Source: Octopus sinensis
Taxonomy: Eukaryota
Assembly (NCBI RefSeq): GCF_006345805.1
Contig: NC_043013.1
Span: forward strand, 22,630,001-22,694,000
DNA: 64,000 nt
Reading direction: 5' to 3'
Part shown: positions 2,324 to 47,972 of the stretch, piece by piece
How positions within the stretch are numbered: position 1 is the first letter of the stretch
Layout of the letters: each line of letters starts with the position of its first letter
Position numbers and translations under genes: made by a program
The notes under the pieces: generated by a model
Databases searched by the model: none
What the model was told of the DNA's origin: nothing
What the model saw: only the letters and a program-made list of their open reading frames with translations

Positions 2324-5300
2324 TAAATGTGTAGCAAATTGTCTGGAATGTTCTGTTGCCAGTTTTGTTTAGAATTTTGAAAGAAAGTCGGAGATATTAC
2401 AACTTTTAAGTAAATGTTGAATAGGCGCAGGAGTGGCTGTGTGGTAAGAAGCTTGCTTACCAACCACATGGTTCTGGGTTCAGTCCCACTGCATGGTACC
2501 TTGGGTAAGTGTCTTCTACTATAGCCTCAGACCGACCAAAGCCTTGTGAGTGGATTTGGTAGATGGAAACTGAAAGAAGCCCGTCGTGTGTGTGTGTGTA
2601 TGTGTCCAACATCACTTGACAACAAATGCTGGTGTGTTTATGTCCCCGTAACTTAGCGGTTTGGCAAAAAGAGACTGATAGAATAAGTACTAGGCTTATA
2701 AAGAATAAGTCTTGGGGTCGATTTGTTCGACAACATGCGGTGCTCCAGCATGGCTGCAGTCAAATGACTGAAACAAGTAAAAGAATAAAAAATATGTGGG
2801 AACAGAATGTACAACTGCAAGTGTTGGATGACAAGAAAGGTATCAAAAGACTTTACTAAAGGATGGTCATTAGTGGCTTAAATGAATGCAGGATTTGTGC
2901 TCAGAATGTGATGTTAACACAACACTGGCCAAGCTACAACTGCCAAGCTCTTTCAAAAAGAGCACAATACTGTTGGGTGGAAGTTTCCACATGTATTCTT
3001 CCGCAGCCAGCTCTAATGGGTCGAAGTGGACATAGCATGGCATGTTACTCAACCACAACCAAATAAATCCCTCCTGGCAGCCTACAAATGTGTGTGTGTG
3101 TGTGTGAGTGTGTGTGATTTCAGACAAATTGCAACACAACTCCAGAATTTCTAATTCTTGCTTGAAGAAGAACTTATGCCATTAAGGAAGCCAAGACAGG
3201 TATGGATGTCACAAGGTTCCATTTATTCTTCCTTTTTAAACCTTAATGAAGTGAACAACTAGCCATATATATATGCTCAGTGTTATATTAGTTAGTTACA
3301 ACCCTCACTGTTCTGAGTTCAAATCCCACCATGAGGTAGTTCACTTGGTTTTTATATTTTATTCCACTTTGGCCTAGTGCAGCCTCCTGACTTCCCAGAC
3401 CCCAGTTGAACCGTCCAACCCATGCTAGCATGGAAAACGGATGTTAAACGATGATGGTGATGATGATGAATCTAGTCCACACTTTCCCTGCAAATTTGTT
3501 GTCTTATGCCAAAGTTAAAAATCATCATCATCGTCATCATCGTAATTATAGGGATAGTTACATGGCAGAATCAGTTGGGCATCAGACATAATGCTTTGTG
3601 CTATTTCATTGAATTCCTGTAAGTTTTGAATTCAAATCCAATCAAGATTGTCTTCTATTCTTCTTAAAATAAAAAAAAAAAAAAAACTAAAAGAAAACGG
3701 TCATAAATTGGGGTTGGAACAGATGATCCATTGAACTTCCTGTTCCCTGCTCCAACATGTGAGGCCTTATTTCCGTGTTAGAAATTATTGTTATTACTGT
3801 TGTTGTTAAGGCAAAGAGCTGGCAGAATTGTTAGCATTTTGGACGAAATGCCTAGTGGTCTTTACATTCTGAGTTCAAATTCTACTGAAGTTAACTTTAT
3901 TTTATTGACCCCCAAAAGAATAAAAACAAAGAACCAATCAAGTTCTGGGATCCCAGTTGACTTTGATCCCCTGCCAGAAATAAAGAAAATGACTGGACTT
4001 GTGCCAAAACTAGCAGCTGCCATTATTATTATTCACATCAAAAGCACTCACTCCACTTTTTGGGGTGGCTGGTGTTAGGAAGGACACCCAACTGTAAAAA
4101 CCCTACCAAAACACACAGTGAAGCAGGGTGCAGTCTTCTGCTTAGCCAGCTCCTGTCAAACCATCCAACCCATGCCAACATGGCAAATGGACGTGAAATG
4201 ATGATGATTATTATTATCATTTTTATTACTATTATTATTATTATAAATTATTGAGCAATGGAATAACAGAATTGATAGACAGAGAATCTCTTTGCTGTAT
4301 TTAATTTTCATAGCCTGCAGAATTAAGCTTTGTGTTTATTTAGCTTGTCCTGAAGTCCATAAAGTAAAATACCAGTCATTTATTGGGAGTCAATTAAATC
4401 TAAACCCCCACCCCACCCAATAGTGTATTACCTTGTGCTTTGTTACAAATTATTATTATTATTATTATTGGGAGAAATGGTAGACTGCTGGAATAAATGA
4501 GTAAAAGTATTCTCCTCTCTCTGTCTTGAATTCAAATTCTGCCAAGTTGGACTTAGCCGTCCTTTTTCTTTAGTTTCAAAATATTAAATACCAGTCAGTT
4601 ACTGATGTCAATCCATTCAACTGTATTTTTCCTGTGGCCTCTTATCACTCTGAAATCATATTTAATTCTAACAATTATTGCAACTCTTGCTCTTGTATTT
4701 TTTTTTTTCCAATCCAATTCATTTTTCAACATTTTGTCATGTTCCTCTTTATGCAACACGTATAAACTGCATGAACACAACTGTTTGTTTTGCCTGCATG
4801 TATATATATATATATATATATATTATACACCTCCTTGCTATGCACTGTGCCAGCTTCATCTTATTCTCCACACTATAGTTGAGCTGCTTCAAAAGTTGCT
4901 ACACAATATGCTATGAACTTTCTCTGCCCTTTTCTCTATCTTTTCACTCCTTATTTTCAGCAATGTTGTTGCTTTATCAGTTTCCCAATGTTGCATGACT
5001 CCATGTGTTTTTGAGACTTTTCTGCTTATTTCATTATATTTAAACAACTTAATTTTTCACATTGATGAACATGTTTATGATGTAATACAATTTGATATGT
5101 GGTAAGATTTGGGTGGAAGAGAAACACAGAGATGTTGCATAAGTTGAGCTGTGGAGTTGCAGCCCTAAGTGTGTGCGCACGCGTGCACACACACACACAC
5201 GTGCGCATGTATACAAACATAGAATTGCCAAGTGAGTTGGTATTTAACAGAAAATAAAATAAATCTCCGACACAGAAGCTGTGAAAACAGCTTAGAAGAA

Positions 5301-7765
5301 TGGGGAAAAACCCTTAGAAAATGGGGGGGAAAAGTGCCCAGCAGGCCACTGCAGAGAATCTAACCCTATACTTTTTAAATTCCAATTGAGTCCTCTGCGC
5401 CCTTTTAAGCATTTCTTGACAACAAATGCCATCTTTTGTAATGTTAGATGATAGCTTTTGGAATGTGAGAACAGTTTTTTTATGAACAAAAACTTAGGAG
5501 TGCCAATTTAAAAGGTACAGAATTTGATTCTCTGCAGTGGCTTGCTGGACACCTCCCCCACCATCACCACCACCATCTTCTAAGCTGTTTTCACAGCTAT
5601 TCTGCATACAAGATTGTCTCTATTCTCTACAAACATACATACATACACACATACATACACACATACATACACACACACACACACACACATACACACACAC
5701 ATACACACACACACACACACACACATACACACACACATACATACACACATACATACACACACACACACATAAACACATACATACATACTGTTTAACAGAG
5801 AATATTGGGTTAATTTGTCCACAAGCAGCTTGGATTATATCCTTCTCTATGTGTTTATGCATACCTGGATGTGTGTGTGTGTATGTATGTGGCATACAAT
5901 TTGATTCTGTCTGTCTTTTTGTGTATTTATGCATAGATATTGCACACAGTTTGTTTTATGTTTTATTTTGTATTTTCATTGTTGATGGCCTTTGAATCAT
6001 TTGTCCATAGTCTCTGTTGTGACATGATGGGTATTTACACTTCAGATTGACGTTGAGCTCTGAATCAATGGATTGGACTGGCTTTCCTCAAAGACCAGGA
6101 AATGCAAAGAAACAAATATCTTGGCTGCTGCTTTTATATAACTAAGGGTCATGGATGGATGAGGAAGAAATGGTGGTTCTTGTCTTGGTGCTGATGCCAC
6201 ATTGAGTACTGGGGGTTTGGTGTTCCTTTCCATTTTGCTATCTTTTGGTATTGCAAGGAATTCCTGTTCACTGCTCTAAACAGAATGGGAGTAGTTGTGT
6301 TCATTTGAAATACTGACTTAACCTTAAACCATGAGAGCAAAGCAGACACTCATAGACCTGATGTGGTTAGTAAGGCAAGAGATTTTTTTTATTAAAAATC
6401 ATCAAAATTATAACTTTAGTGATCAGCACAAGTATTTTCTTATCTCCCCTTTGGAAACATAAAGACAACAGGCCAATGAACCAACAAGACAGCCTCTACA
6501 TAGTTGTTAGACTTGCTAGAAATAGTAGCCAAACCCTACTGTTTTTAAGAACAGGTTGACTAATGTGGCTTTGCATATGTCCCTTGCATACAGGAAAAGA
6601 CTGGGGAGCCATGGTTGGAACACCTTTCTTCATAGGTCACAACTCAGCAGCTAAAGCTAAAATACCTGGAAAAAGAAAAAGAAAAACAACTACCACTTCC
6701 TCACACCACCACTACCATCCCTGTCACTCCAACCAGATTGTCTCATCCCTTTTTATGGTTTTCCGCTGCTACAATTTCCCATGTTTTCTCATTGATTCAA
6801 TTTTACAGAACTCAGATGCTTCTGCTCTCTGTCTACTCCGAAGGACAGGTTCCAATTTCAGCTGGTTCTCTCTCTCTGTCTCTCTCTTCAGGTGAAAGTA
6901 AAAGCTATCCAAGACTACCAAGCCAAGCGACCGGATGAATTGTCATTCCGAAGAGGGTCCATTGTGAATAATGTCCATAAACAAGAAGGGGGATGGTTAG
7001 TGACACCTTTTCTTTTTGCTATCAACAGCTTTATGTCTGTCTCTCTTTCTTTTTATCTTTGTGGTTGGCGGGAGGGGGGGCGCATGGTCAAGAGACCAAG
7101 GAGTTTGTTTTGTAATTCTGAAGCTCCATAAATTAAATAAGGGTAGAAATTGATATTAATCAATTAAAACCAGTGGCTTAGCATATTTTAAAAAAATCCG
7201 AAGATTAAAAATTATTTTACATACATTGTTTTACATTTTTAAATAAAAAATGTTCTCTAACCGGTAAATTGACTGCTGTAGTTTATTAACTGCAGAGTAG
7301 TTTCCAATCTCAGTGCGCCAAAGTGAAGTCATTTGAAAGATACACTTAAATATAATTTGTAGAACGTTATACATGCTGGATTTCGGTTGAGCATTCTGTA
7401 TCTAGTTCAGGAAATTGTGTTTTGTAAATGACAGACTATGCTGATGATCTTGCAGATGTTTGCGTGTCCATATATGTAAATATTAACAAGTGAAACCAAT
7501 GGTACATAGGTAATCGTTTTTTATTTCGTATATTTTCATTTGTCTTGCTTATTTTTACAATTTGGTTTTTTGCACACATTATTCGTGGTAATGGCGATTT
7601 GGCATCTATGTTTAGCATGTAGGCTGTCCACTTTTAGTGGTCAGTCCTCTAAATTTTGTATGTGTATGTGTGTGTGTGTATATATATTTATGTATGTATC
7701 TATGTATGTATGTACATATTTATGTATATACACACACATGTATATATGTAGGTAGGTTTGTATAT

Positions 7766-7847
<82 letters not shown>

Positions 7848-10800
7848 GTACTCACACAACAGGTTTCTTTCAGTTTCCATCTACCAAATCCACTCACAAG
7901 ACTTTTGGTCAGCTGAGGCTGTATTAGAAAACACTTGCCCAAGGTGCCACGCAGTGGGACTGAACCCAGAACCATGTTGTTGGGAAGCAAGCTTCCTAGC
8001 ACACAGCCACACTTGCACCTATCAGTTTGACTTGTTTGTGAATGCTGTGAGTGAATGCAATCCCAGCAAACATAACAACTGAGTGGCTGTAGCACAACAG
8101 TTCCTGAGATTTTCAACACAAAATGGTTGTTTATTCTCAGGTCTGCATTGAAGAAATAGATTTATGCTCAAAAGTCTTTCAGAAAATTCTTTGGCGTTGC
8201 CGCTCAGTTACTAGTGTCTCTAAAGCTTAAGTATGGCCTGTATTTGAATGCTGACCACGTATCTAAAATAGTACTTCTGCTACACACAAACATAACAGGT
8301 GCCATCCAGAGAATGCCACCCTGCTGATCAAGAGATCTACCCTCAACAATGCCCTACATCTACACCCCACCACATGTGCTATCCTTCCTCCCTCTTCTTA
8401 TTTTCCAATTCTTAACTCATTTGATGCACCTACCTTTCTTTCCATTGCCATCATCATCATCATCATCGTTTAATGTCCGCTTTCCATGCTAGCATGGGTT
8501 GGACGATTTGACTGAGGACTGGCGAACCAGATGGCTGCACCAGACTCCAATTTTGATTTGGCAGAGTTTCTACAGCTGGATGCCCTTCCTAATGCCAACC
8601 ACTCACAGAGTGTAGTAAAAAAACATTGCTGGCATCGGTCACGTTCGGATGGTGCTTTTTTCTTGCCACCGGCACAGATATCACAACTACAATTTCCATT
8701 TGATATATTTATTGCAATTCATTTCACAATCCTCTCACTAAATACTCCACTCCCCCCTCTCTCTCTCTCTCTTTCTAAATTACAATTCTCTGAAACAATC
8801 TTTCTACCCACATTTTCATGAACCCCATTGTTTTCATCCACGAGACTGCTTCTACATTTCTAACAACAGCAACAATTATTGCCAAAATCCCATAAATTTC
8901 CCAAACAGGAATTGATTACCTGAAAGAGAGAAGCACTGGAATATGTTCATCTTTTATTGTTTCAGGTGGCGAGGAGATTATGGCACTGACAAACAGCATT
9001 GGTTCCCTGCCAATTATGTTGAAGAAATTGATGGTTCTGATGATACAGGGGACACTTCTGATCTCGGTTCTTTACAGAAAGGATCCATAGATTTAAAGAA
9101 CAGTATTATAGGTAAGGCCTCTCATTATCCCTTTCTTTCTTCAAAGACAGGAAAGCACTCTTGAAAATGCATTAGAATTCTTTTTTTGTTTGTTTTGTTT
9201 TAACTTCTTGAACTGCGGTCATGTTGGGGGCATAACCTTCAAAATAAGCAGATTATGTTGGGACCACTGCTTTGTCTGGTGCTGGTTTCATTGGACTTAT
9301 AAGGAATAAAGATAGTGTTGGCATGTGTAGGATTTGAACTTAAAACATTAAAGGACATAATCAAACATTCAGAAGGTATTGTGGAGCCTTGCAGCATGAG
9401 TGCACCATTGTACGAGTAATTTGCTGTACAAGCGGAGACCCCTGTGAATTTTTGTCTTAAAGTACAAATAGAAATCCGCAGCATGAGTGAGTTCCATACA
9501 AGCGATTGCTCGTCGGTGCTGGACTCACACACACTCCCCCAACGAGCACAGCCTCCACTCACTCAGTTCGTCTGTTTATCTCATTGTAACCGCATCTCTA
9601 TTGTGTTTTTTCCCAGTGGTTTTACTTTTTTTAGTTTTGTGTGTTTTTTGCTGTTATTTTATGATAATTAGTTGTGTTAGCCAAGGGTCCTAAGAAGGTT
9701 AATGCAAAGGACAATGGTGAGAAGAAGAAAAAGCTGATTACGATAGAACTGAAGAAGGAAATCGTTGATAAACATGAGAGAGCAATGCGTGTAGTTGTAT
9801 GAGCACATAACTACACCTTTTCAGTTTTAAAACCCATAAAAAATGGTTTTGTGGTGGGCTTTTTTAGGGGCTGGAACAGATTAATTATATTTTAATTCAT
9901 TTCAATGGGGAAAATTGATTTATAAAACGAGCTTGATCATGGAACAAATTAAACTCCTTACTGCAAGATATCACTGTATTTTGCCAAACATTAAATATTG
10001 CCAACAGACTGTTCTGGAATCTTTGCCAAAGACATTAATGAAATCAAATAGGTCCAATCCTAAGAACAGTTAAAAGGAATTCTTTCAAATATTAGTTTGA
10101 GATTGGCGAAATAGATATTCTAGTTTTGACTTGTGTGTCCCGAATTTACATCCTGCACCATCGTATGATATATCGATGAGCCAGAAGACATCTGATTTCA
10201 TATACTTACCTACTTCTAATGTGAAGACCCATGATGTAGTTGTACTAGTGATCACTAGAACATGGGTTCGACTCCCAGGCTGAGCAGCACATTGTGTCCT
10301 TGAGTGAAACACTTCATTTCACATTGCTCAGTCCACTTGGCTGTCAATGGATCACCTTGCAACAGACCAGCTTTCCAATCAGCTGGAGAATGTTGGCCTG
10401 CTCACCTAGCCAGCAGGATGGCATCATTCAAAAGCTAAAAAACAATGCAAAGCGCATTGTGACCAGTGATGTATGACAACATCCAATAGTCTGGATATCA
10501 TGATCTACTTATCATAGGAGTCTGCTGCGACTCCTAGGGCTCATAATGCTGGAGATTAACCTGGTTTCCATGGCATGGAAGTGAATGAGATTACAACACA
10601 CTCTCCCACCTGAATGGGATGCCAGTCCATTTCAGGGTTAACTTCCCTTCATTTACATCTGAGTGAACTGGGACAAATGAGAAATGAAGTATTTTGCTGA
10701 AACCGTGATCTTGCAATCACGAGTGCAGCAGCCTAACCACTAAGCCACATGCCTTCACTATCTACTTGTAATGCTTAAGGTGAACTGGCAGAGTCAGTGG

Positions 10801-12435
10801 AGCATCATATGGAAAGCTTTGTGCAGTCTGTTGTGACCTTTTACACTCTGAGTTCAAATTCTGCTGGGGTCAACTTCAGCTTTCGTCCTTTTGGGGTCAG
10901 TAAATAAAGTACGAGTTGTGGTATTGGCAGAACTGTTAGAATATCAGACAAGATACCTTGTTGTGGGTCTTTGCGTTCTGAGTTCAAATCACACCTCCTG
11001 TCAAATGAACAATGAGACTTATATCAGAAATTGCAACTGACAAAAATCAATCGAATTTTAGTTTCATTGGATCAATCAAACAAACAACTGCCACCACCAC
11101 CACTTCATCCATTTATGAAATATTGTTTTCATTTTCACGACACTAGAATTTAATGTGAAAGTGTTTTGACTGCCTTTTCTAGTCAGTCAAATAGCAGTAT
11201 TAAAAGCTTTCTCATTGCTCCATGACCTTCCTTCTTTATGACACTAAGAAAATTTGGCTGCTATTTCTATCAAGCCAGTTGAGAAGCTCCCTTATTTGCT
11301 TATGTCCTTATCTAAAATGGTAATTCAAAGGAAAATTGGTTGCTTGGTGTTAGGGTCTTGGAGTCTTTAAATATACCCCCTTATGTTCTGACTTCAAGTA
11401 TCATCAACAAGAACGACAACACTGTATTTAAATTGTTATTTTTTTTAGCCTGAAATTTTGTGTTTCTGTTTGTATTTCTTCACAGAGAACGTGACCGGTC
11501 CTACCAACCTGTTTGTCTTTAGAATTTATAATTGCTACCAGAACAGTCCACTAGAAATTGGTTGTGAAACTTCAAATGACTTTGTGGAATGGTTCAGTGC
11601 CATCAGCAAGTGCATTGCTTCTGCCAATGAACGGGTAGGTTGAGTTGTTCTTGCCTCTCTTCTATCTTGTATACATTGTTTAATCTTGATTCTGATAAGA
11701 AGAATGCAATTTCCCAAACTATTCAGCCTCACATTTAGAATTTACATTTACTCCTTGGATTCCAATGAATATCAATCTCTTGGACAGGCACAGAGCTGCA
11801 GTTCCTGCAAGCTGTTTGCGTATCTAGGTTTGTGATTAATTGGGGTGGGTGTGTCTTTGTCTCTCCCTCTGCTTAACACATTCACTTCCAACTACAAGTC
11901 ATCGCATAGTTAGCAATCTATACAATTTTTCCATGTCTGCTGTGTTTTATTAACTATTTGTGAGGAATTTGATACTTTTTTTACTAATACTTTATATTTT
12001 ACTTCACAGGTAAATCATGGATTGCAATTAGAACGAACCAAACATATTGCTCAGGAATTTTCTGACCTCATTGTCTACTGTCAAGCTGTTCCTTACAGTC
12101 AGTATTGTTATTATCATCATTATTATTATTAGTTAAGGTAGTGAGCTGGCAGAATCGTTAGCATATTGGGTAAAATGCTTAGCAGCATTCCATCTGTCTT
12201 GGTGTTTTGAGTTCAAATTCCACCAAGGTCGACTTTGCTTTTCGTCCTGCACTTGTTTATTCTGTCATTTGTTTTAGTCATTTAACTACAGCCATACTGG
12301 AGCAGCACTGCTGTTAATGGTTTTATTTATTGAGTAGCTAAGTTCACCTGAGTTATGTCCCATTAGAGTTAACTTCTCTTTACTGATTTAAATATGACTA
12401 GGTGTTATGTACATCAAATTACATCAGAATACATG

Positions 12436-12466
<31 letters not shown>

Positions 12467-13980
12467 AGTAGGTTTCTGCTGCATTTCACTTGCAGGGCAA
12501 TGTCCAAAGCGAAAGTGAAAGACACTTGATCCAAGTTACCCCAGAGTGGAATCAAACCTGAAGTTAGCTGGTTGTGAAGAGAACTTGTGTTTGAACAACA
12601 CAGCCCTTCCTTCACTCATGAATAAAGTTTCTTCCATTGTCGATCACAAAGAATGAAGGTAATTTTGGGCCACATCTATAATACCATAATATTACCATTC
12701 CAGCTGTTCATAAAATTTTTCAGAGTTTGATTCATTCCAAGAAATAGCAATATCAACAACAACAACATTGATGTAACCCATCAATGTCTCTATAGATATG
12801 ATTGCAGTATCGTTCCTACCATTCCAGTGGCATAACATTTGAGTTCACAGACCATTGTTTTTTTTGCGAATGGTTTTATGAAGAAGATGGTAGCATGTCA
12901 GCAAGAATTTGATCAGATTTATGGAAGGAGTTTCAGAGGATTGTCATTTTGGGGTGGAAGGATAAGACAAAATGATCAGCTGAGCAGTAAGACACTGAAT
13001 AAGTGTGATCAGATTGAGACTTGAGTGTTATGGGGTTGGGCATGGGTGGATAGTCTGCGAGAGAACATGAGAACCGACTGAATGATGATGCAGTGTCTCT
13101 TAGTGAGACTTTGTAGTGTTTGTAAAAAGATCTTATAATGAAAGTCTGTTGATTTGAAAAAAAATTCTTCCCTCGTTTATGATTTTGTATATCTTTGACT
13201 GAAGCAGGCAGGATTCTGAAAACTGTTTTTGTTTGTTCATTTTATTTCTGTTTTCCTTCAGAATTTGGTAATTACTATGAAATGTCTTCCCTGCCGGAAA
13301 CAAAAGCTGAGAAGATGACAACCAAGAAAGAAGCAAAATTATTTGCCAAATATCCTTTACTATGAAATCGTCATCCACTTCGTCATCCTCTTCATCATCG
13401 TCATATCCTTCGTCATCGTCATCCTCTTCGTTATCTTCCTCATTGTCATCCCCTTCATCGTTGTCATCATAGCCATCCTCTTTGTCATTGTCATCCTCTT
13501 CAGCATCTTCATCCTCTTCCTCATTGTCATCTGTATCAAAATAAAGAATCATTTTGTTCCATCAGAAATTTTGTTTATTTATAGTTTAGTTTTCATATTT
13601 TGTTTTGTTTTTGGAATTTTTTTTTTTTTGAAACCCAACATAGAGTGGGACCTTATCCTTATTTTCTTATTTTCAGAACCTTCAATATGGTGGGAGTTGG
13701 GGGGGGGAGTAGTCCTCAAACTGCTGTCCTCACCTGAATCCTTGCACTACTATGTCCTGTGTTTAAAGGTTGATAGTGGTGCTAAATCAGGCAATAAGTC
13801 TACCACCAACAGGAATGGTCATTCTGAGGGAGATTTCACCCTCAGAACTTTAATTCAAGGCTGCCATGAAAGACGCTTGACCCAAGGAAACTTCATAACA
13901 TATATTCCAAGCTTATGCCTAGATGCATCTACTTATGTATGTACTTACACACATGCATGCACACACACTCACATATATAC

Positions 13981-14044
<64 letters not shown>

Positions 14045-15361
14045 TATTTACATTTGATGGATATTTGTCCTCATCTTGTTTGTTGTTAACACAATGTTTC
14101 GGCTGATATACCCCCCAGGCTTCATCTGGTGTCTTGGGGAAATTTCGAACCTGGGTTCTCATTCCTAAGGTATTTTTGATGTTGTTGTTATTATTATTAT
14201 TATTATTTAGATGTACTGCTTGGAATCAAACTTGGAATCTTGGGGTTAGTAGCCCGTGCTCTTAACCACTATGCCATATGCCCCCGAGTTCGATTCTAGG
14301 CAGTGACCTGAGTAATAATAAAAATGATCATAATAATAATAGCATCGAAAAATACCTTAGGAATGAGAATCCAGGTTCGAAATTTCCCCAAAACACCTGA
14401 TGAAAGCTGAAAGATTGTATTAACAACAAACAAGATGAGGACAAATATCCATCAAATTTAAATAATCTACATAATTCCTCATCTCTCAAATATAGAACTA
14501 TATATATATATGCATGCACATATACACATGTTACTTATGTAGGTATTGGTGGCTCTGTGGTTAAAAAGCCTGTTTTGCCAATGTTGTGGTTCCTGATTTA
14601 GTCTCACTGTGTGGCACCTTGGACAAGTGCCTTCTGATTTAACCCCAGGCCAACCAGTGCCTTGGGAGTGAATTTGGTTGACAGAAATTGTGTGGAAGCT
14701 CATTCTATGTGTGTGTCTTTGTATTTGTCACTCCTAGCACTTGACAACAGGTGTTGGTTTATTTATGTTCCCATAACTTAGTGGTTTGGCAAAAGAGACC
14801 CACAGAATAGCTACATTTGTTCAATTAAACCCTTTAAAACAAAGCTCCATTTTAGTAATTTTCCATTTAAAAAAAAATCTGTGTCTGTTTTGGTTACGAA
14901 GTTACAATATGTTCCCTTCTGATTAAATTTCCTTGACTCCTTGTTCACATATAACAGAAACCAACTTAGCCGAATCTATCCAGGACGGCACCGGGTTGAC
15001 TCCTCCAATTTCTATCCTGTTCCAATGTGGTGCTGTGGGTCCCAAATGCTTGCCCTAAATTATCAAACTGGAGACCGAAGCATGCATTTACATCACAGCC
15101 GGTTTGCCATGAACGGCCAGTAAGTTGTGTTTTGTTTTGCTCATTCTTTTGTACTTTGCTGATGTTCGTAGCCAAGTTGATAAGGTGGTTGGTGCAGCAG
15201 CCAATAGCTGCAAGTTCAAAATCCTTCCGCAAGTGCTGTAATGTATCTGTGGGACAAGAGTCCTTAATCCTCAATAGCTCTGACCCCTGATTCAGTAGAC
15301 ATATCAGGTTTGAGTGTGGATTGGATTTAAAAATAACTCCCTTTTAAAAGCTGTTAACGTA

Positions 15362-15398
<37 letters not shown>

Positions 15399-18300
15399 TC
15401 CTCTCTCTCCCTTCTTCTCTCTCCCTCTCTCTCTCTCTCTCACACACTCACACGTGCATTTGCTCATAATGTGAGATGACAGTGCACCATATTTTGATTT
15501 TAAAAAACTGAATATTTTAATTAAGATGTATCTACTTAACGTTTTCCCTTTAACCAATATTCTGAAATCTGAATATTTTCTTTAAATGCAATTAATTATT
15601 GATTTGTGCATTTGTTACTTCAATCAACTAATTTTTGCACTTGTGTTTTTTTGTTCATTATTCTCAATAACTTGACACTAAACTTAAAACGTATGACAAT
15701 GGATTGCAGTGAGAGAAAAATAACAATAGTAGCACCGAGATACTTTTGACACATTTTTTTCTGGAAGACAACTCCGACCATATCCCCCCCCCCTATTATT
15801 TAAACAATAACTTACATCATTTCGCCCTTAAATATGTTTTCGTTTTAAACATTAAACGTTTTGCAATTAATAAATAGTGAAGAAGCTACTGCTGATCGTA
15901 GTTGTCTCCCTTTATATGTAACTTTTTTTTTTTTTGACTAAGTTATTTCATTTGTACATTTAACAACCATCCAGCCGTCGTAAAGTTTTACTTGTATTAA
16001 AATACTAAGATCTTTTTAAAATCTCAACAATGATATAGTAAATGTCCGTTAGTTCAGCCAAACGATGCTGATTGCCCCCCCCCATCTATTTCATGAAATA
16101 AACGAAACGTGAATTTAATGGTTTCCATTTAAGATGGATCTTTGACGCCGTAATGCCTTTAACTATATTTTATAATAATGAATATGTACTCATTTCATTG
16201 ACTGTAGTTTTTGAATTGCACTTAATCACTGAAACTTTTTGAGCTTCCTGTCCCCGTGTTACAACACGTCAACAATGCTATTAACTTTTTGTACAGCCAC
16301 AGAGTATTTGACAAAGGGAAGTGTTAACAACGTCTCACAAAATTGCTCTATCGTACATGCTCCACATCCCATCTACTTCTTACATTAATATCTTGTAGAC
16401 ACGACACTGTTTTTTGATGCATACTCTTAAAGATCTTCAATCTTGTACTTCCTATCTCCTGTCGTAGCATATGAGAGCAAATCCAGTATCTTAACTACAT
16501 TGTGTCTCATCATCATCATCATCATTTAACATGTGTTTTCCATGCTGGCATGGATCAGACAATTTGCCCAGGAACTGGCAAGCCAGAGAGCTGCACCTAG
16601 CTCCAGTGGTCTGTTCTGGCATGGTTTCTACAGCTGGATGCCTTTCTTAATGTCAACCACTTCAAAGAGTGTATATTGGGTGGCTTTTATGTGGTGTCAA
16701 CGTAGATGCTTCTTATGTGGTACAGGTGCTTTTTACATGGTACCAGTACCCCTTGTAACAATGTCTGTATATGAGCTTAAGCTATAGTTTGTTTCCATTG
16801 ATTGCTTGTTTTGTTTACAAAATTGTTTATTTGTTTTTCAGATGTGGTTATATATTGCAACCGGAATGCATGAGGGCCGAGGACTACGACCCTTTCAGTG
16901 TCCACACAATGAAAGGAATTGAGCCAATGATGTTAACAATGACCGTAAGTTGATGGTCTTTCTCAGTCTTACTGTTTTCGTTATAATTAAACTGTTAATT
17001 ATAAATTATCTTTACAATTTTATGATTGAATAATTAAGACAGAAGAATGTGAAGCGGGATCTTTGACAATATCCATTTTGTTAGTTTAATGTTCCAAGTC
17101 CAGATTTTATTGGAAATCCCTGCTAATTCATTAAGATAAAAAGAAAAAAGTAGATACCAGTTATACTTTGGTCAAGTCCTACGACTCTGCTACTTCTCTA
17201 AATAGTTGGCTTTCTACTTTGTCACCAGAAGCTAGTTCATCGTCATCATTTAACGTCCGTTGTCCATGCTGGTACGGGTTGGATGGTTTGACTGAGCTGG
17301 CAGGCTCCACTCTGATTTGGCATGGTTTCTACGGCTGGATGCCCTTCCTAACATCAACCACTCCGAGAGTGTAATGGGTGCTTTTTACGTGCCACAGGTA
17401 CAAGTGCCATTTGCATGACATTGGGGTGTGTTTATGTGCTAATTTGCATGACACCGGTATCTGCCACAACTTTGCCCAATGGGTCTCTTTCTCAAACACA
17501 ACATTAATGCCAAAGGTCTTGGTCTTTGCAAGAAATCAATTCTACTTGATTTCTCCATGAATATTTGAATGTTCCTGCAACACTGCAATGGTTTCCCTAA
17601 TACCTTCTCCATGTCTCGAGCTTTATCTTTCCAATCTTATCCCCTACTTCTGTTGTTTACTGATATGAGTGTTCTATAAAATAGTGGTTGGAACCATTTC
17701 CTAATTCTAATTGAACCATTTTTTTCTTTACTCCACTTGGTCCTTATTCTTTCTGGTCATAGTATCCGAAATAGAATTGGATTCCACAATGCTTGTTTAC
17801 TTTTGATATATATATAAAGACAAAGTGTAACCGCTTTCCTATTAAAGGACGCAGGACATATTTGTGTTTGTGTGGGGCATTATACACACGGCCCCTTTTT
17901 AAATTCCTCTGGGGTCAGCCTAGTTTTTAAGGGAAACACCAGAGTTCCAGAAAACCAGTGATGGCCTGCATCATTAAATAGCAAATCCAGAAACCTGTCC
18001 AAGTAAAATAAATTATTTTGCCATGAGGAAGGGGCCAGCCTTCATCTAATGAAGGGTTTTGTCCAAAACATTAGATTTCTTCTTTTCTTTAGCAAAATGA
18101 TTTATTCCATTTTTGAAAACTTTTGGTCATTTTTTTAGTTTATATTTGCATTTCCAGCAGTCTTATGAACACAATGTTGTTTTCTTAATAAAAATGCAAG
18201 GAATACCTGTCTTGTTTGCAGGGGGGATCTGTTTTGGGTCACATGGACATGTTTTAACTTCCTCTCTTCAAACGGTTTCTCAACCAAATATTTATTTGCA

Positions 18301-21300
18301 ATTTCTTTATAGATTTTCACAATTTCTAAATAAAATAAACAACAAAACAATAAATGTAGAATGTTTTTGCTTTTATTTCCTTTTTTTTCTTTCTTTTTTA
18401 TTCAGATAATTGGTGCCAGGCATTTAGTAAAGCAAGGTCGAGGCATTGCCAGTCCTCTTGTTGAAGTTGAGGTCTGCGGCCTTGATTGTGACACCCATAA
18501 ATGGCATTCAAGTACGAAAGGTAAAGATGTTTCTAGAAGTCTTGTCAGAAGAAAGAGATACTTCTCTGATTGGAGGCAGGGGTGGATGGTGGCGTATAGG
18601 CAGTTGTTTGCATTTGACCCTTTCGACACATCCGGCCAAAATATTTGACCTGTCATGTTGAAACTGGCCAGTTCTGGCCTCTCACACCAACCCTACAATG
18701 CCATTCTAAAACTAAGCAGGTACATCATTGAAATCTGTAAACTACGACATAATTCAGGATTAATCCAAAGTTGAAAGGTCGAACGATTTAAAAAAAGTGA
18801 AAACAAACAAAAAGAATAATAAATATAATAAGTATCTTTTGTGCCACAGAACCAATATAATGAGGAAAATAGGTGGGGTGGGGGGTTATGTAGAGAGGCG
18901 GATGAGCTCCAGGTTGACGGCTCAGTGTCTTGTTCAGATATGATCATGCTATATTTTGTTGTTTTTCACTAAATTTATTTCTGAATTGTTCTTTGTTTTC
19001 ACTTGGCACCTTATATTATTTTTGCAACCCCCTACTCTCCTCCCCTTCTTTTTAGCTATTCCCCTACCTTTCTGCTACACCCCATTCTACCCTCCTGCTA
19101 CCCCCATTCTATCCCTCTACCTTTCTGCTACCCCCCCATATTCTACCCTTCTGCTACCCCCTATTCTATCCCTCTAACCTTCTGCTACCCCCATTCTATC
19201 CCTCTACCTTTCTGCTACCCCCCCTATTCTACCCTTCTGCTACCCCCTATTCTATCCCTCTAACCTTCTGCTACCCCCATTCTATCCCTCTACCTTTCTG
19301 CTACCCCCCCTATTCTACCCTCCTGCTACCCCCATTCTATCCCTCTAACCTTCTGCTACCTCCCATTCTATCCCTCTAACCTTCTACTACCCCCTGCCAT
19401 TCTACCCTTCTGCTACCCCCTATTCTATCCCTCTACCTTTCTGCTACCCCACCCTCCATTCTACCCTTCTCCTACTCTCATTCTATCCTTCTACCCTTCT
19501 GCTACCACCCACTCATTCTACCCTCCTACTACACCTCATTCTACCCTTCTGATTTGGCATAGTTTTTTATAAGTAACTCAAATCAAAAATTCTAGTACCA
19601 TGAACCACTTCTTAGCATAACATTACATAAACACACACACACATATATATATACATTTGTTTTTGCTTTCTCTTTAACAGTGGACAGTGGTCTAAATCCA
19701 GTCTGGAATGAAGTCTGTCACTTTGATATCGAATGCCCTGATCTGGCCTTATTGCGTATCGTTGTGCAAGTGGAAGATATGGTAGGAGACCCCAGTTTTC
19801 TTGGACAGGCTGGTTTCCCTGTGCATACATTACGATACGGTAAGGAAGCTGATGCTAAATTTCACAAACACTCCAAGCATTACCTGTCCTTTTTTTATTG
19901 TCTCAGTTTGATGTTTGCATGAAAGTCTATTATTAGATAATGCTACTGGCACCGTGTTAGTGGATTGGATTAGCCCCAGTATGCAACTGGTATTTTAGTT
20001 TATCAACCCCTTATGGATGAATGACTAAGTTGGCCTCAACAGAATTTGAACTCAGAACTTAAAAAGTCAGAAGAAATGCCTCTAAGCATTTTATCTGACA
20101 TTCTAATGATACGAAGAAGAAGAATGTGTTACATAGGCACAAGGCCAGCAGTTTTAGGGTGGAGTAAGTGTATGAAATTGAGACCCGGCATTTGTCAAAC
20201 CCTTCCCTTAGCATTTCTGCAGTTGGCCCACTTTATTTGACCAATCATTTCCATTCCTTATGATATTGACTTTTTTTTTTGATATGAAGCTGGGCCTTGA
20301 CCAGTCCAGTACACAAAGGTTGGTGGAACTCTCATTCAAGTCTTTTATTGGGTTTAATCATTCTGGTGGCACCCATTCCTCTCCAGGATATTGGTGCCGT
20401 TTTTCTTTAATTGAGTTCACTCATCTTTGATAAGTTTTATCTTTTTTTAATCCAGCCTGGGGTCCCCCACACCATTCCCACAAGGCAAGCCCAGTAGGGG
20501 CTGGTTTAGTTGCTGACCACTCAAGCATGAACAGCTGGTATTGGATTACCTGGTTACCAGTAGCAGGTTCCCATCAATCTGAGGTGGCATCAGCCTTCAC
20601 CTGCCCTCAAATACCAGAATTTGGTTTCAGTGGGATTTGAACTCAGAACATTAAAAGCTCAAACAAATTCTCTAGAAACCCTTTTTATGATTTTCTTAAC
20701 AAATTCTCTCTACTTTTTGTTTCCTCCTCAGGTTATCGAGTCGTTCCATTATTGAATGCTTATTCGGAAGAATTAGAGTTAGCTTCTCTTTTAATCCATT
20801 TTGATATAAGGAACACAAGAGTAAGTATTTCTGTTGCTTTTGTTTGTTAAAAAACAGCCATTGCTTAATCCTAATCCACTTGCAATCTTTCAATCGTTAT
20901 GCTATACCTGTTGTGAACAGACAATGTCTAAACAACATGCAGTAAAGTCGGCAGAGGAATGGCTTTGTAGATCCTGATTTTGGTTTAGAGCCTTCTGAGA
21001 CCCTTCCTTCTGCAAATGTTCTTAGAATATCTCCTCAGAGTGATCCTGCTTTTGACCAGTTTTACCGTTTTCTTCATCATTGATGTGGACAGTTTTTGAA
21101 AAAAATCCTCACATGTATTTTTTTGTTGATGGTGTTCCAGGCAGACGGCTTTTTCTACTTAATAAATACACACCCACACACTGTCTTTTACTTTCTCTCT
21201 TCTTCAGGTTGTGCATTAATCAGTTAACGTTAAATGTTTATTTTTGTTCTATTTTCTGTTGACTTTATTGATCTTCCATTTAAATAAGCAAACCTGCATT

Positions 21301-23287
21301 TCCATTACATCATCCACAAATCTGTTGTTTATTTTAACAATATAATCTTCATTTCTCACCAAAACTACCTGACACCACCTGTAGTAACCCTCCCACAATA
21401 ATTGCTAGAAGGCCACCAGTTCCCCAACTTTCATAAAATCATATTCACCTTCCTGTTATCTACCTACAATATTACCTCATGAAGTGGAACAATTTTTACA
21501 AAGGAACGGAAATCTGTTTGGTTGACTTAAGAAATTCTAGACTCTCTAATAGAAGTAGACACATTCAATAAGGTAATTATCGATGGCTCTGCAAAATATA
21601 TAAATTAAAAGACCAGAGACAACTTCAAACACAATACACCTTACATAAAGCCACATCCTCGGCTGTCTTAACCGTTTCACATTTAGATTGATCTGGCACA
21701 TATAGTGCTTATTTAATCACATTGTTTTGAATTAATCAAGCTCCAAAACGGGGCCATTCAAACATATTTGTAACTTAAATTTTTTGTCAGTCGGTGCATA
21801 AATACCAATGTCTCACAATGATGCATTTACAATAAAATAAGAGACCTCTTGTTGCTACCAATACTACAGCTGCCCTCATCAACCTGTCTCCCTCCACACC
21901 ATACCTTCAGATACCATTTCCAATCTTGCTGCCAATATTGCCAAATTCATGTAAACCATTTACCAATAATAGCAACACCATAAAAAACAAAAGTAACCTC
22001 AAACTTTTTGCAGGACAGCGAAGACCAGGAGATTTACAGTTCCATCCAAGAATTACGGAAACAGGCTGATGAATTGATGGAGCAGCTTGAAGATGAGGAG
22101 GATGTGATGCAACGCGATATTGTTGAACAACAGCTTAATGAGGCCACAGAGAAGTTACAAGCCAAAAGAGAAGAGCGCAAACAGAAGAAGTAAGTGCCTC
22201 TGGTTTGTTTATCTGGTTGTTGTTGTTTAGCCCCGGGTCAGCAAAACTAATGACAGCTGTGATAAAATGGGGATCAATAATATTGTGACCAAAATAAATA
22301 TCCATCCAGTTTGGTGACAAGTTGTCAGTTGCTCAAGGTATTGAGGGCCCTGCTCATTCAATCAGCATGGAAATAATTTAGTAATTCCACAAATGTGTAG
22401 AACTCTTGAAAATGGTCCTCAGGTAGGATCGATGTGACAAGGTTGAACCTTTAAATTACCAGAACAATTTCCATCTGATGAGCTTCAAATTTCTATCTGA
22501 CCAAATTCCACTCACAAATCTTGGGTTGAATGTCTGAGGCTTTACTAAAAGAGATGTGGTCAAGATTCCATGGAGTGGAATCAAACCTGAGACTTTGTGA
22601 TGATCAATATTTTAACCATTTGGCCCTGTTCTATGCAATATGAGGGAAGGTAAATTGCTTTTGATCGTTGCCAGAGCAGCCAACTGGCTTCCATGCCGGT
22701 GGCACGTAAAAGCACCATTCAAGCGTGATCGTTACCAGCATCGCCTTACTGGCACCTGTGCCGGTCACATGTGTAAAAGATTCGAGTGAAGTCTTTGCCA
22801 GTACCGCCTGACTGGCCCCGTGCCAGTGGCATGTAAAAAGCACCCACTACACTCTCGGAGTGGTTGTCGTTAGGAAGGGCATCCAGTTGTAGAAACTCTG
22901 CCAGATCAAGATTGGAGTCTGGTGCGGCCATCTGGTTCGCAAGCCCTGTCAAAATCGTCCAACCCATGCTAGCATGGAAAGCGGATGTTAAACGATGATG
23001 ATGATGATGATGAAGAAATGTTTGTTTCTTTATTTGGTTGATGTTAAGTTGCTAACCCCAACATTCACCATCATCGTCATCATTCTAGCATCCATGCTGC
23101 CATGGATTGGATGGAATTTGTTGAGGCAGATTTTCTATGGCCAGATGGTCTTCTCATTGCCATCCTTGACTTGTCTCCAAGAAAGATAAAACTTCCTTAT
23201 GGTCAGGCATGTTTTCATTGAACGCTAGAAGCAAAAGACACTATTTCTATGGCAGTGACCCATGCATACAAAGACAAGGAGACACCA

Positions 23288-23322
<35 letters not shown>

Positions 23323-23929
23323 ATTGCGGTTTCTGTCTACCAATTCCACCTACAACACTATGGTCAGCTTGGGGCTACAGTAGAAGACATTTGCCCAAGG
23401 CACTGCACAGTGGGACTGAACCCAGAACCGTGTGGTTAAGAAGCAAACTTCTCAGCCACACAACTAATATCTTCACCTCTACACAACTAGTTCATAGATT
23501 GAAGGTTCAATTCTTGTCACTGACACAATCCTGTGTTCCTGGAAGAGACACTCAAATGCTTAATGGTCTGTGGTGCCATTTCGTGTCAACTTGCCAATAT
23601 GTTCTGCTTAAGGTGGAAGAAAATTATGATAATTCGGTGTTTCTTGATCTGGTATTGCTGAAGAAAATAATAAGGTGGACACTCCAGTTGTGAACCTCAA
23701 ATCAAAATCTCATTATTCTGTGCCATGTTTAGTTGTATGTGATGGCTCATGTTGGATTTCACATGTAATATCAATGCCGTAACAAAACAAAGATTTATTT
23801 ACATTTGACGGATATTTGTCCTCATCTTCTTTGTTGTCAACACAACGTTTCGGCTGATATACCTTCCATCCTTCATCAGGTGTCTTGGGGAAATTTCGAA
23901 CCTGGGTTCTTGTTCCTAAGGTATTTTGA

Positions 23930-38823: not shown

Positions 38824-39214
38824 CACGCACTCACGCATACACACACAGTGTGTATAATAATGTACATAGAAATAATGTCTGGCAGCAGACACCAGCTAAT
38901 CTACAAGAACATAAACATAATACATCAAATTAACCAATCTTTGATTGACTCTCTCTCTCTCCCAGCAGGACCACCACAGACGAAATGTATTGAATTATTT
39001 AATGTTTATTCCCCACAACTTCTGAGTCCACATAAATTTTGTCCGGCTTTATACACACAGGATGTCATAAATACCAACTAAATATATGCACAATATTTGC
39101 AAGAAGTATATGTGGCAAATACTTTCATGAATGTATATGTGTGTATGCATGCGTGTATGTGCTATACGCATATAACTCTGGTTAAGTTGCGGTGTTTATA
39201 CGTAGGTAATGTAT

Positions 39215-39388
39215 AAATGCATGTATGTACCATGCACACACACACACACACACATATATATATGTATGTATGTATATATGTGCATGTATATATATGTATG
39301 TATATATATATGTATGTATATATATATATGTATGTGTATATGAATATATATGTATGTGTATATATATGTATGTATATATATGTATGTG

Positions 39389-39440
<52 letters not shown>

Positions 39441-39644
39441 TGTATGTATATATATGTATATATATATGTATGTGTATATATATATGTATGTGTATATATA
39501 AGTATGTATATATATATATATATATGTATACATATATATATGTATGTATGCATATATATATGTATGTATGTATATATATATATATGTATGTATATATATA
39601 TATATATTGTATGTATATATATATATATATGTATGTATGTATGT

Positions 39645-39707
<63 letters not shown>

Positions 39708-39758
39708 CATGTATGTATGCATGTATGTATATATATATGTATGTATGTATGTATGTAT

Positions 39759-39789
<31 letters not shown>

Positions 39790-39796
39790 CATGTAT

Positions 39797-39827
<31 letters not shown>

Positions 39828-40152
39828 CATGTATGTATATATATATGTATGTATATATATATATATGTATATATATATATGTATGTATATATATATATAT
39901 ATGTATGTATATATATATATATGTATGTATGTATATATATATATATATGTATGTATATATATATATATATGTATGATATATATATATATATGTATGTATA
40001 TATATATATATGTATGTATATATATTATATATGTATGTATATATATATATATATGTATGTATATATATATATGTATGTATGTATATATATATATGTATGT
40101 GTATATGAATATATATGTATGTATATGTATGTATATATATATATGTATATGT

Positions 40153-40193
<41 letters not shown>

Positions 40194-40531
40194 TATATGT
40201 ATATATAATATGTATGTATATATATATATGTATGTATATATATATATATGTATGTATATATATAATATGTATATGTATATATATATATATGGATGTATAT
40301 ATATGTATGATATATATATATATGTATATAATATATATATGTATGTATATATATAGTATGTATGTATATATTATATGTATGTATATATATATGTATGTAT
40401 ATATATTATATGTATGTATATTATATATATGTATGTATATTATATATATATGTATGTATATATATATATGTATGTATGATATATATATATATGTAGTATA
40501 TATATATATATGTATTATATATATATAATAT

Positions 40532-40575: not shown

Positions 40576-42466
40576 GTTAGTTAGTTAGTTAATTTGGCTC
40601 AAAAGCAAATAGCAAGGCCATGTAGGGGGACATGGATTTAAGTACAGGGTGGTGTTCATGTAAAGAGTTCAGGCCACTTGAGGTCAAGGGAGGCTTTGAA
40701 CAAAGCGGTCGTCGGCATCTTCACCATCTCGTCTGGCAGCTTGTTCCACGGATCCGCAACCCGGACGGAGAAAGCTCCTCTCCTTCGATTGAGATGAAAT
40801 CGTCGCAGGTAGAGCTTTTCGGAATGACCCCGCAGCCGACGCTCTGGAGCAGGAGTGAAGAACAGCTCTTTCGAGAGGTTACACTTTCCGCTTATGATGT
40901 TGTGGGCGAGAATGAGATCATCACGGCGGCGGCGTTTTTCAAGAGAATAAAGGTCGAGCGTCCTCAGCCTTTCTTCGTAGGACAAATTTTTGAGACCGTG
41001 AACCATGCGGGTAGCCAGCTTCTGGACTCTTTCGAGATGCTGTATGTCTTTGAGCAGATAAGGAGAAGAGGCTTGAATCCTGTACTCCAATATGGGTCTC
41101 ACCAGCGTGACATAGAGTGGTAGGAATATGGCTGTTGTGAGCATTCCGAATGACCGTCGAATCAAGAACAGAATTCCGCGTGCTTTGTTGGCAGTATGGA
41201 CGCACTGGGCCGAAGGCGAAAAGGAGGAATCCACGAAGATACCCAGGTCCTTTACCTGATCGGTCCTCTCCAGCAGCAGACGACCCGGCTCGAAATCAAG
41301 TAGAGTTGCAGGAGGAGAGCCAACAGGCAGTTGACAGCACTTTGACACGTTCAGACACAGGTCCCATTCGTTAGACCACTTCCAAATTTGGTGGAGGCAT
41401 CGACGAAGATCCTCTATATCACCGCGAGGAGCGACCAGTTTGATATCGTCGGCAAATAGAAGGGTGTGTTGCGTGAGGTCGTCGGGCAAGTCATTTATGA
41501 AGACTAAGAACAATAAGGGCCCAAGCACTGAACCTTGAGGCACGCCACTGCTCGCACTGGAGACGTCGGACCGCGAACCATTAACTTGGACTTGAAAGGA
41601 GCGATCTGAGAGGAAGGCACCAACCCATCGTACAATATCCGGATGGAAACTATATGCTTGAAGCTTGACAAGTAATAGGCGGTGGTTTACCGAGTCAAAA
41701 GCTTTGGCAAAGTCCAATAAAACGATGTCAACAGCATCACTATCATCGAGGATGCGCGTCACCAATTTTTCCATTACCAGTAAGTTGGTCAAGCATGATC
41801 TCTTCGGCACGAAGCCGTGTTGGGAATCAGAGATAGAGGCTGTGTTTTGGAGGTGGAGCATCATACTTTTCTTAAGGATGGTTTCGAACATCTTGCTGAT
41901 TATTGATGTAAGGGAAACCGGTCGGTAGTTAAGCGGGTCTTCGCGGCTCCCTTTCTTGAAAATTGGGCAGATTATCGCTGTTCTCCAGTCCGCAGGTATA
42001 ACACCCGTCGCCAATGACATATTGAATAGACGTGTTAAGGGCTCGCAGATGACCGGAGCCAACGCTTTGATAACCCGTGGGTGTTGACATCGAGGCCTTG
42101 AATAACACGTTTGACTTCGTCCCGCGTGATGACCAACCGAAGCATTGGAGGTACCGATCTATCAAATGGAGGGGGTTCACGACCATCATCTTGTTTGAAA
42201 ATAGTTGAAAAAACCTCGGCAAATAATTGACTCTGTTGATAAGGGTCCTCAATCGATACGCCTGTTGAGTCTACCAACGTTGCAATCTGGTTGTTCAAGC
42301 GGGAATTCCGTTGGACATGGGCAAAGAAGGTTTTTGGATTGCTACTGCATTTGCCGCGATTTTGTATTCATAACTGAAGCGTTCTTCCTTTTCAATTTTC
42401 ACGGCTCGGTCTCGTTGAGTTTTGTACACCTCAAAAGCTGCAGTCGAATCCAGATTTTTGAATTCA
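40573..42466 (-). mobile_element. 5'-truncated CR1-like LINE, young; 3' (TAAC)n tail
   Basis: GC-rich block with RT ORF (YRPVSLTS, QHGF, DFAKAFD, GVPQGSVLGPLLF, LFADD) and CR1-type C-terminus (RGHSEKL..FSVRVADPWNKLP). Frameshifted upstream part continues to ~42460; tail TTAGTTAG at 40573-40592. Confidence 0.92.
40656..42062 (-). CDS. Reverse transcriptase (LINE ORF2 C-terminal part, 468 aa open)
   Basis: All RT subdomains including FADD are present without stops; the endonuclease is absent because of 5' truncation and a frameshift near 42070. Confidence 0.9.
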   Translation of the reverse strand: MAPVICEPLTRLFNMSLATGVIPADWRTAIICPIFKKGSREDPLNYRPVSLTSIISKMFETILKKSMMLHLQNTASISDSQHGFVPKRSCLTNLLVMEKLVTRILDDSDAVDIVLLDFAKAFDSVNHRLLLVKLQAYSFHPDIVRWVGAFLSDRSFQVQVNGSRSDVSSASSGVPQGSVLGPLLFLVFINDLPDDLTQHTLLFADDIKLVAPRGDIEDLRRCLHQIWKWSNEWDLCLNVSKCCQLPVGSPPATLLDFEPGRLLLERTDQVKDLGIFVDSSFSPSAQCVHTANKARGILFLIRRSFGMLTTAIFLPLYVTLVRPILEYRIQASSPYLLKDIQHLERVQKLATRMVHGLKNLSYEERLRTLDLYSLEKRRRRDDLILAHNIISGKCNLSKELFFTPAPERRLRGHSEKLYLRRFHLNRRRGAFSVRVADPWNKLPDEMVKMPTTALFKASLDLKWPELFT

Positions 42467-45822: not shown

Positions 45823-45865
45823 AACACACACACACACACACACACAGAACGGGATTTATATTATA

Positions 45866-47939: not shown

Positions 47940-47972
<33 letters not shown>

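Follow-up and report, generated by a model that had tools for sequence, protein, structure and literature searches.

Minor introns are known to be common in the phospholipase C (PLC) family, 60% of whose genes carry one (PMC6865273). In the curated human and mouse set, the PLC genes with a minor intron are PLCB1-4, PLCD1/3/4 and PLCH1/2, and neither PLCG1 nor PLCG2 is among them (PMC6717393). The PLC-gamma subfamily is thus the mammalian one without a minor intron, in a family that is otherwise well provided with them. Molluscs have been reported to be relatively rich in minor introns, in a survey that included Octopus sinensis (PMC10639083), which makes the presence of a U12-type intron plausible in this lineage. 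Here we describe a stretch of 64,000 nucleotides (nt) of the O. sinensis genome (contig NC_043013.1, positions 22,630,001 to 22,694,000, forward strand), called the window below, which carries the 3' part of a predicted PLC-gamma gene. The interval 13350-14948 of this window is, with high probability, a genuine U12-type (minor-spliceosome) AT-AC intron, as judged from its splice signals and from the protein sequence that it interrupts. It is located in phase 2, in the Lys codon that immediately precedes YN(R/K)xQLSRIYP, a conserved motif in the catalytic Y box. No PLC genes are listed in the supplements of PMC6865273 and PMC10639083, and a literature search found nothing specific on minor introns in PLCG genes or on how intron positions compare among PLC genes. 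The intron is probably already implicit in genome-wide catalogues of minor introns, though it is not described in the literature that we searched.

Host gene and splice signals

The exons were searched for by tblastn, using a C-terminal sequence of PLC-gamma1 as a lead only, and their boundaries were then read individually. This led to a model of 11 exons on the + strand (Table 1), which form a single open frame of 463 codons up to the stop. When compared with the sequences of solved structures, the 463-residue product matched residues 774-1217 of PLC-gamma1 (E = 4e-119), followed by PLC-gamma2 (5e-110) and the best PLC-beta (8e-40). Pfam recognized SH3, PI-PLC-Y (residues 151-258) and C2 domains in it. 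The order of the domains in the window is SH3, C half of the split PH, Y and C2, the exons for the X box and the SH2 domains lying beyond the window. Judged from these similarities, the host gene is very probably a PLC-gamma gene.

The original prediction, made from the letters of the DNA and its open reading frames, had placed the intron within the Y box of PLC-gamma. The junction indeed falls between residues 192 and 193 of the 463-residue model, inside the PI-PLC-Y domain. The peptide spanning it aligned with PLC-gamma1 structures without a gap (E = 2e-25), and the 100-residue alignment block that holds it was likewise ungapped to PLC-gamma1. All other donors of the gene had been described as U2-type GT sites. 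This was correct for the remaining nine introns in the window, which are plain GT-AG introns; the 5' part of the gene lies beyond the window.

As read from the sequence, exon 5 terminates with ...TTATTTGCCAA at 13349 and the intron opens with ATATCCTTTAC at 13350. At its other end, the intron closes with ...AATTTCCTTGACTCCTTGTTCAC at 14948, and exon 6 opens with ATATAACAGAAACC at 14949 (in a longer reading, ATATAACAGAAACCAACTTAGCCGAATCTATCCAGG). Joining 13349 to 14949 leads from ...KEAKLFAK into the YNR motif, the intron splitting the Lys codon as AA/A, in phase 2 (here and below, a slash in a nucleotide motif marks the splice boundary). If the intron is left in place, the 5' side reads KYPLL and then TGA, and an in-frame TGA is also found 9 codons before exon 6, so that read-through meets a stop on both sides, as had been stated. 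Because the intron and exon 6 both open with ATAT, the cut can slide by up to 4 nt without any change in the product. Among the five resulting placements, AT...AC is the only recognized pair of splice sites, the others being TA-CA, AT-AT, TC-TA and CC-AT.

The nine intronic bases of the 5' splice site, ATATCCTTT, are the same as in curated human sites including those of PLCH1, SCN5A and KCMF1. The presumed branch adenosine, A14936, is part of TTCCTTGAC, the sole match to TCCTTRAY within the intron. It is separated from the terminal C14948 by 12 nt, with CTCCTTGTTCA between them, the typical spacing in U12-type introns being 10-15 nt. The 12-mer that contains the branch site, ATTTCCTTGACT, is letter for letter the curated branch site of mouse Nr2c2ap. 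The AT and AC termini, the U12 5' consensus and the branch consensus 12 nt from the AC are therefore as the original prediction had described them.

Scoring against U12 position weight matrices had been proposed as a check, and we carried it out with log-odds matrices derived from 83 curated human minor introns (supplement of PMC6717393), 22 AT-AC sites being used for the matrix of the AT-AC 5' splice site. The scan covered 127,978 positions of the window, in 128 kb of sequence. The 5' splice site CAA/ATATCCTTT reached 15.3 bits, compared with a median of 15.1 for the AT-AC class; this was the top score, found at 1 of the 127,978 positions (itself). The branch site ATTTCCTTGACT reached 13.2 bits, which is the 65th percentile of the 83 curated sites, and 2 of the 127,978 positions scored as high. 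With the U12 matrix for 5' splice sites, the donors of the other nine introns scored between -6.5 and -21 bits. The interpretation as a U12-type AT-AC intron was thus upheld by termini, 5' site, branch site and reading frame alike, that is, on every sequence-level criterion.

The motifs themselves are not enriched in the window. On both strands, ATATCCTT was found 4 times for 3.1 occurrences expected, and TTCCTTRAC was found 2 times for 1.3 expected. The arrangement is considered non-random because of where the motifs are placed, both top-scoring sites being found exactly where the homology with PLC-gamma breaks and resumes. We estimate the joint chance of finding both motifs at pre-set positions at about 1e-9.

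Table 1. Coordinates, in the 64-kb window, of the predicted AT-AC intron, its signals, the exons of the host gene model and the repeats inside the intron
Feature	Position	Strand	Description
Predicted AT-AC intron	13350-14948	+	1,599 nt; phase 2; termini AT...AC
Predicted U12-type AT-AC 5' splice site, ATATCCTTT	13350-13358	+	Consensus match and matrix score
Predicted U12 branch-point sequence, TTCCTTGAC	14929-14937	+	Matches TTCCTTRAY; presumed branch A at 14936
3' terminal AC	14947-14948	+	Long polypyrimidine tract absent upstream; sequence reading
Exon 1	6892-6995	+	With exon 2: SH3 and start of C half of split PH; GT-AG
Exon 2	8966-9111	+	With exon 1: SH3 and start of C half of split PH; GT-AG
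Exon 3	11486-11634	+	C half of split PH; GT-AG
Exon 4	12010-12097	+	Start of Y box; GT-AG
Exon 5	13262-13349	+	88 nt; U2-type acceptor ttttccttcag/ at 13261; ends with AA of Lys codon AA/A; ungapped to PLCG1
Exon 6	14949-15119	+	171 nt; third base of Lys codon to CA of Gln; strong U2 donor CA/GTAAGT
Exon 7	16842-16944	+	Exons 7-11: end of Y box, C2, C-terminal tail; GT-AG
Exon 8	18406-18520	+	Exons 7-11, as above; GT-AG
Exon 9	19681-19839	+	Exons 7-11, as above; GT-AG
Exon 10	20732-20820	+	Exons 7-11, as above; GT-AG
Exon 11	22014-22193	+	Exons 7-11, as above; GT-AG; stop TAA
Imperfect 9/18-nt tandem repeat, TCGTCATCCTCTTCATCA	13367-13538	+	Begins 17 nt past the 5' splice site
Second copy of U12 5' splice-site motif, GTC/ATATCCTTC	13403-13411	+	53 nt inside the intron, within the tandem repeat
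Foldback (inverted-repeat) element	14036-14473	+	In the intron; arms of about 140 nt, 90-92% complementary

Position of the intron in the PLC family

The position of the minor intron of vertebrate PLCB genes could be derived from published reporter data. With a mouse Plcb3 reporter, the expected splicing product is 245 nt long and the alternative product 127 nt (Jacquier et al., PMC8848931). The alternative product results from a cryptic 3' splice site, and the exon ends 7 nt after this cryptic site (PMC8848931). The branch site that belongs to it, GCCCTCAAC, codes for Ala-Leu-Asn within VALNFQTL. The 7 nt correspond to Thr-Leu plus one base, so that the exon ends in phase 1, like that of vertebrate PLCG1. 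Since 245 - 127 = 118, the addition of 7 nt gives a length of 125 nt for the 3' exon of Plcb3. In the PLCB3 sequence taken from the PDB, 125 nt is accounted for by 1 nt, 41 codons (YNKQQ...NFQTL) and 1 nt. The Plcb3 minor intron would therefore be in phase 2, in the Glu codon before YNK. The curated exonic triplets fit with this position: GGA/ in PLCB2 and PLCB3, AGA/ in PLCB1, and AAA/ or CAA/ in PLCB4. PDB sequences have Val-Asp in PLCB2 and Val-Glu in PLCB3 at the site, both of which are compatible with GGA/, and PLCB4-like metagenome loci show FVNYNKRQ. The minor intron of PLCB and that of the window thus appear to be identical in codon position and phase, this being derived for mouse Plcb3 and compatible for PLCB1, PLCB2 and PLCB4.

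The situation is different in the vertebrate orthologs of the window gene. Three vertebrate-type PLCG1 genomic contigs of metagenome assemblies (L011, L007 and L006) have FLQYNR(L/R)QLSR(I/V)YP inside one exon, with no intron at the site. This exon reads cag/AGATCGGC...(K)IGTERACYRDMSSFPETKAEK...FLQYNR...ALNFQTP G/gt. L011 differs from rat PLC-gamma1 by one residue over the stretch YRDMSS...NFQTP of the PDB alignment. The comparison of intron positions with orthologs, which had also been proposed at the outset, received a partial answer: among vertebrates, the site is occupied in PLCB, by a U12-type intron in the same phase, and is free of introns in PLCG1.

Because its codon position is that of the vertebrate PLC-beta minor intron, the window intron is probably an old one that vertebrate PLC-gamma1 has lost. 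On balance, and with some reserve, we favor the view that it is the PLC-gamma copy of an ancient U12-type intron of the PLC family, older than the separation of beta and gamma. This intron would have been kept as AT-AC in the window gene, would be present as a GT-AG U12-type intron in vertebrate PLCB, and would have been precisely deleted from vertebrate PLCG1.

Other relatives were collected by scanning metagenome contigs with the family alignment, which yielded 455 of them; the loci examined were the best 80 by tblastn, many of which are transcript contigs. All 80 are contiguous across the site because they were kept as best tblastn matches, which biases the set towards uninterrupted genes. 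Such a set serves to show that the intron is absent, as from vertebrate PLCG1, but is of no use for detecting further genes that carry it. A rescan with the downstream exon only, intended to remove this bias, found no relatives in genome contigs, and 11 distant PLC-like genes in viral contigs. Two of the loci, L012 and L021, are PLC-gamma-like genes of AT-rich eukaryotes and have a short intron nearby (at about 6100-6200 and 1070-1150, respectively). We considered it as a slid copy of the window intron and rejected this idea: the intron follows Tyr-His-Gln in phase 0, 10 nt downstream, and has ordinary GT-AG termini. The minor introns of PLCD and PLCH were also considered as candidates for the same site, an idea that fails for PLCD1 (see below).

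Several points weigh against the reading given so far, either in its first part (a U12-type intron) or in its second (an ancient one). The junction 13349^14949 is a prediction from the collinearity of the protein and the strength of the motifs. The presence of a minor spliceosome in the host is taken from the literature, and an Rfam scan of the 64-kb window gave no match at all, hence no minor-spliceosome small nuclear RNA (snRNA) and no intron-hosted RNA. The PLCB3 position was derived from the product sizes and sequences of the paper and from the PDB protein, not from genomic DNA, and the residues at the site of PLCB1 and PLCB4 (Val-Asn) are those that we presume. The common position fails for PLCD1, in which Arg is found before HN and the exonic triplet GCA/ is unfit for phase 2, so that its minor intron is off the site and phase of the window intron. 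Finally, 80 of the 80 eukaryotic loci examined, including several PLC-gamma-like ones, are uninterrupted at the site, and an ancestral intron therefore requires multiple losses.

The last two points are also what one would expect if the intron were a real U12-type intron that had been gained by PLC-gamma in this lineage and had hit the PLC-beta site by coincidence, for example at a favored proto-splice site. The 80 uninterrupted loci comprise vertebrate-type PLCG1 and several PLC-gamma-like genes of invertebrates or protists. We regard such a gain as unlikely, though worth keeping in mind. The match with PLCB extends to codon, phase and type of spliceosome, and the sampled loci were, as mentioned, chosen for contiguous matches. 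Furthermore, the neighboring intron 4 is common to the window gene and vertebrates, indicating that the window gene keeps old intron positions. Gain of minor introns is, besides, very rare in animals.

Rival readings, predicted splicing and surrounding repeats

The motifs might be coincidental, the mRNA being formed with a GT-AG, GC-AG or other AT-AC pair and encoding a shorter or different Y box. Both motifs are indeed near chance frequency in the window, and in-frame alternatives do exist on paper. We went through every GT-AG, GC-AG and AT-AC combination close to the junction that is in frame and free of stops. With any GT-AG or GC-AG pair, the conserved ...YNR block would lose 19 residues or more, and the donor is poor, in keeping with the earlier claim that no nearby GT/AG pair preserves the conserved junction. 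The other AT donors are without U12 consensus. The pair 13350/14948 is the only one that combines this consensus with an ungapped alignment to PLC-gamma1, and it has the top matrix scores at both ends. An AT-AG variant using the AG at 14956-14957 (+) is in frame and drops only 9 nt (Tyr-Asn-Arg) from the Y box, but its acceptor would be 21 nt away from the branch adenosine, beyond the usual 10-15 nt. A coincidence of motifs thus seems very improbable.

Other copies of the 5' motif were also considered. The copy GTC/ATATCCTTC at 13403 (Table 1) could possibly act as a decoy, a cryptic donor or a cryptic U11 binding site; its use as a donor would insert 53 nt carrying an in-frame TGA. Further matches to ATATCCTT at 5837 (+) and 33971 (+) were rejected as additional minor introns, since they have no evident coding context and fit with the 3.1 occurrences expected by chance. 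No TCCTTRAY branch site was found downstream of 33971 on the same strand.

The region is rich in repeats, the intron itself holding a microsatellite in addition to its tandem repeat and foldback element (Table 1), which raises the question of an assembly artefact or of a decaying pseudogene copy whose boundaries would be functionless. We give this little credence: the 11 exons make up one frame of 463 codons to the stop, the other junctions are canonical, the similarity with PLCG1 is strong throughout, and the repeats all lie inside the intron, clear of the splice signals.

The least probable reading is that of a U2-dependent AT-AC intron, which belongs to a rare class spliced by the major spliceosome. 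The termini by themselves leave the type of spliceosome undecided, but an AT-AC intron of the U2 type has a polypyrimidine tract and a U2-like 5' site, in which AT precedes an AAGT-like sequence, whereas the window intron has ATATCCTTT as a 5' site, TTCCTTGAC 12 nt from its end and no long pyrimidine tract.

With the minor spliceosome as the predicted machinery, removal of the intron can be outlined along the lines established for other introns of this class. The U11/U12 di-snRNP (small nuclear ribonucleoprotein) would bind both ends together, U11 pairing with ATATCCTTT and U12 with TTCCTTGAC, in which A14936 would be bulged. U4atac/U6atac.U5 would join next, and U6atac would displace U11 at the 5' site. 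Two transesterifications would then link 13349 to 14949, the AC located 12 nt past the branch point being the acceptor. The strong U2-type outer signals of exons 5 and 6 (ttttccttcag/ and CA/GTAAGT) would probably assist through exon definition. Retention of the intron would cause translation to stop after four codons (KYPLL and stop), so that C2 and the distal half of the Y box would be lost. Since this stop lies before the remainder of the Y box and C2, with five exon junctions downstream of it, unspliced or mis-spliced RNA would give no active enzyme and is expected to be a target of nonsense-mediated decay. As retention truncates the Y box and C2, only the spliced form can be expected to yield active enzyme. 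Minor introns are often rate-limiting, as the original prediction noted, and the window intron may be so as well. A search for the junction peptide in a collection of 5.8 billion proteins retrieved only two fragment open reading frames (P0001 and P0002), both eukaryotic and both uninterrupted at the site, and no spliced product of the window gene.

In practical terms, gene predictors limited to GT-AG introns would truncate or distort the Y box, and a correct model of the gene needs the junction 13349^14949. If the reading that we favor is right, the PLC family would offer a datable case of retention of a minor intron, switching between the AT-AC and GT-AG subtypes, and loss among paralogues. 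The output of PLC-gamma, a central signaling enzyme, would, furthermore, be tied to the activity of the minor spliceosome in this lineage, unlike in vertebrates. What is known of how minor introns work is unchanged by the window intron.

The intron and its surroundings contain several other features. The foldback element is predicted to form a long, near-perfect RNA hairpin (-239 kcal/mol, z = -28.6), which would make the pre-mRNA double-stranded over a long stretch about 475 nt upstream of exon 6, and an extra copy of one arm is present near 23885 (-). An antisense open reading frame of 139 residues, rich in Asp and Glu (13133-13552, -), overlaps exon 5 and the tandem repeat. Pfam found no credible family for it (best E = 0.0075, below the cut-off), and it is most likely a by-product of the tandem repeat. 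A dispersed short repeat is seen as open reading frames with a common peptide at 2457-2615 (-), 7846-8082 (+), 14479-14703 (-), 23209-23439 (+), 45856-46275 (-) and 47658-48023 (-). It looks like an element of the SINE (short interspersed nuclear element) type with at least six copies, one of them within the AT-AC intron. Downstream of the PLC-gamma gene, a 468-residue open reading frame at 40656-42062 (-) matches RVT_1 (E = 6e-33) and represents a retrotransposon copy. A very long TA/CA-rich microsatellite block (39100-40530; GC content of 0.29 in the 38-40 kb bin) yields many spurious open reading frames rich in Tyr, Ile and Cys on both strands.

Comparison with known minor introns

Compared with AT-AC U12-type introns of human and mouse, such as those of SCN5A, KCMF1 and PLCH1 (Olthof et al. 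2019, PMC6717393), the window intron is alike in its nine 5' bases, ATATCCTTT, and in the 12-nt spacing of the branch site. It is also alike in being a lone minor intron among U2-type neighbors and in having no long pyrimidine tract (PMC6717393). The host gene differs, and use of the minor spliceosome by the window gene is predicted from sequence. The minor introns of PLCD3, PLCH1 and PLCH2, which are AT-AC, and those of PLCD1 and PLCD4, which are GT-AG, belong to the same gene family and the same spliceosome class as the window intron, the first three sharing its termini as well.

The product of vertebrate PLCG1 (L011, L007 and L006) is the orthologous protein. Both genes have the intron upstream, a phase-1 intron that splits the Lys codon preceding IGTE in one and FGNY in the other. 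From there, vertebrate PLCG1 has one exon, from (K)IGTERACYRDMSS to ALNFQTP G/gt, and the phase-1 intron that follows it is not found in the window gene. We compared the downstream exon end (15119/15120 in the window) with that of L011 (1217-1225), L025, L027, L029 and L063. An exon ending with QT(P/L) plus 1 nt, in phase 1, was observed in vertebrate PLCG1, in mouse Plcb3 and in one invertebrate-type PLC-gamma. The window gene is without this intron, its exon 6 extending to ...AMNGQ (CA/gtaagt).

A further close counterpart is the minor intron of PLCB1-4, as documented for mouse Plcb3 and Plcb2 (Jacquier et al. 2022, PMC8848931). It shares with the window intron the U12 class and the placement in phase 2 before the Y of YN(K/R)xQ(L/M)SRIYP. 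The two differ in the paralogue that carries them, beta versus gamma, and in their termini, which are GT-AG in PLCB and AT-AC in the window. Mammalian PLCB genes have a weak or divergent branch site (CTGACCGAC in Plcb3, for example), whereas that of the window intron conforms to the consensus. Finally, the introns of mammalian PLCB2-4 are short (110-339 nt), compared with 1,599 nt for the intron of the window.

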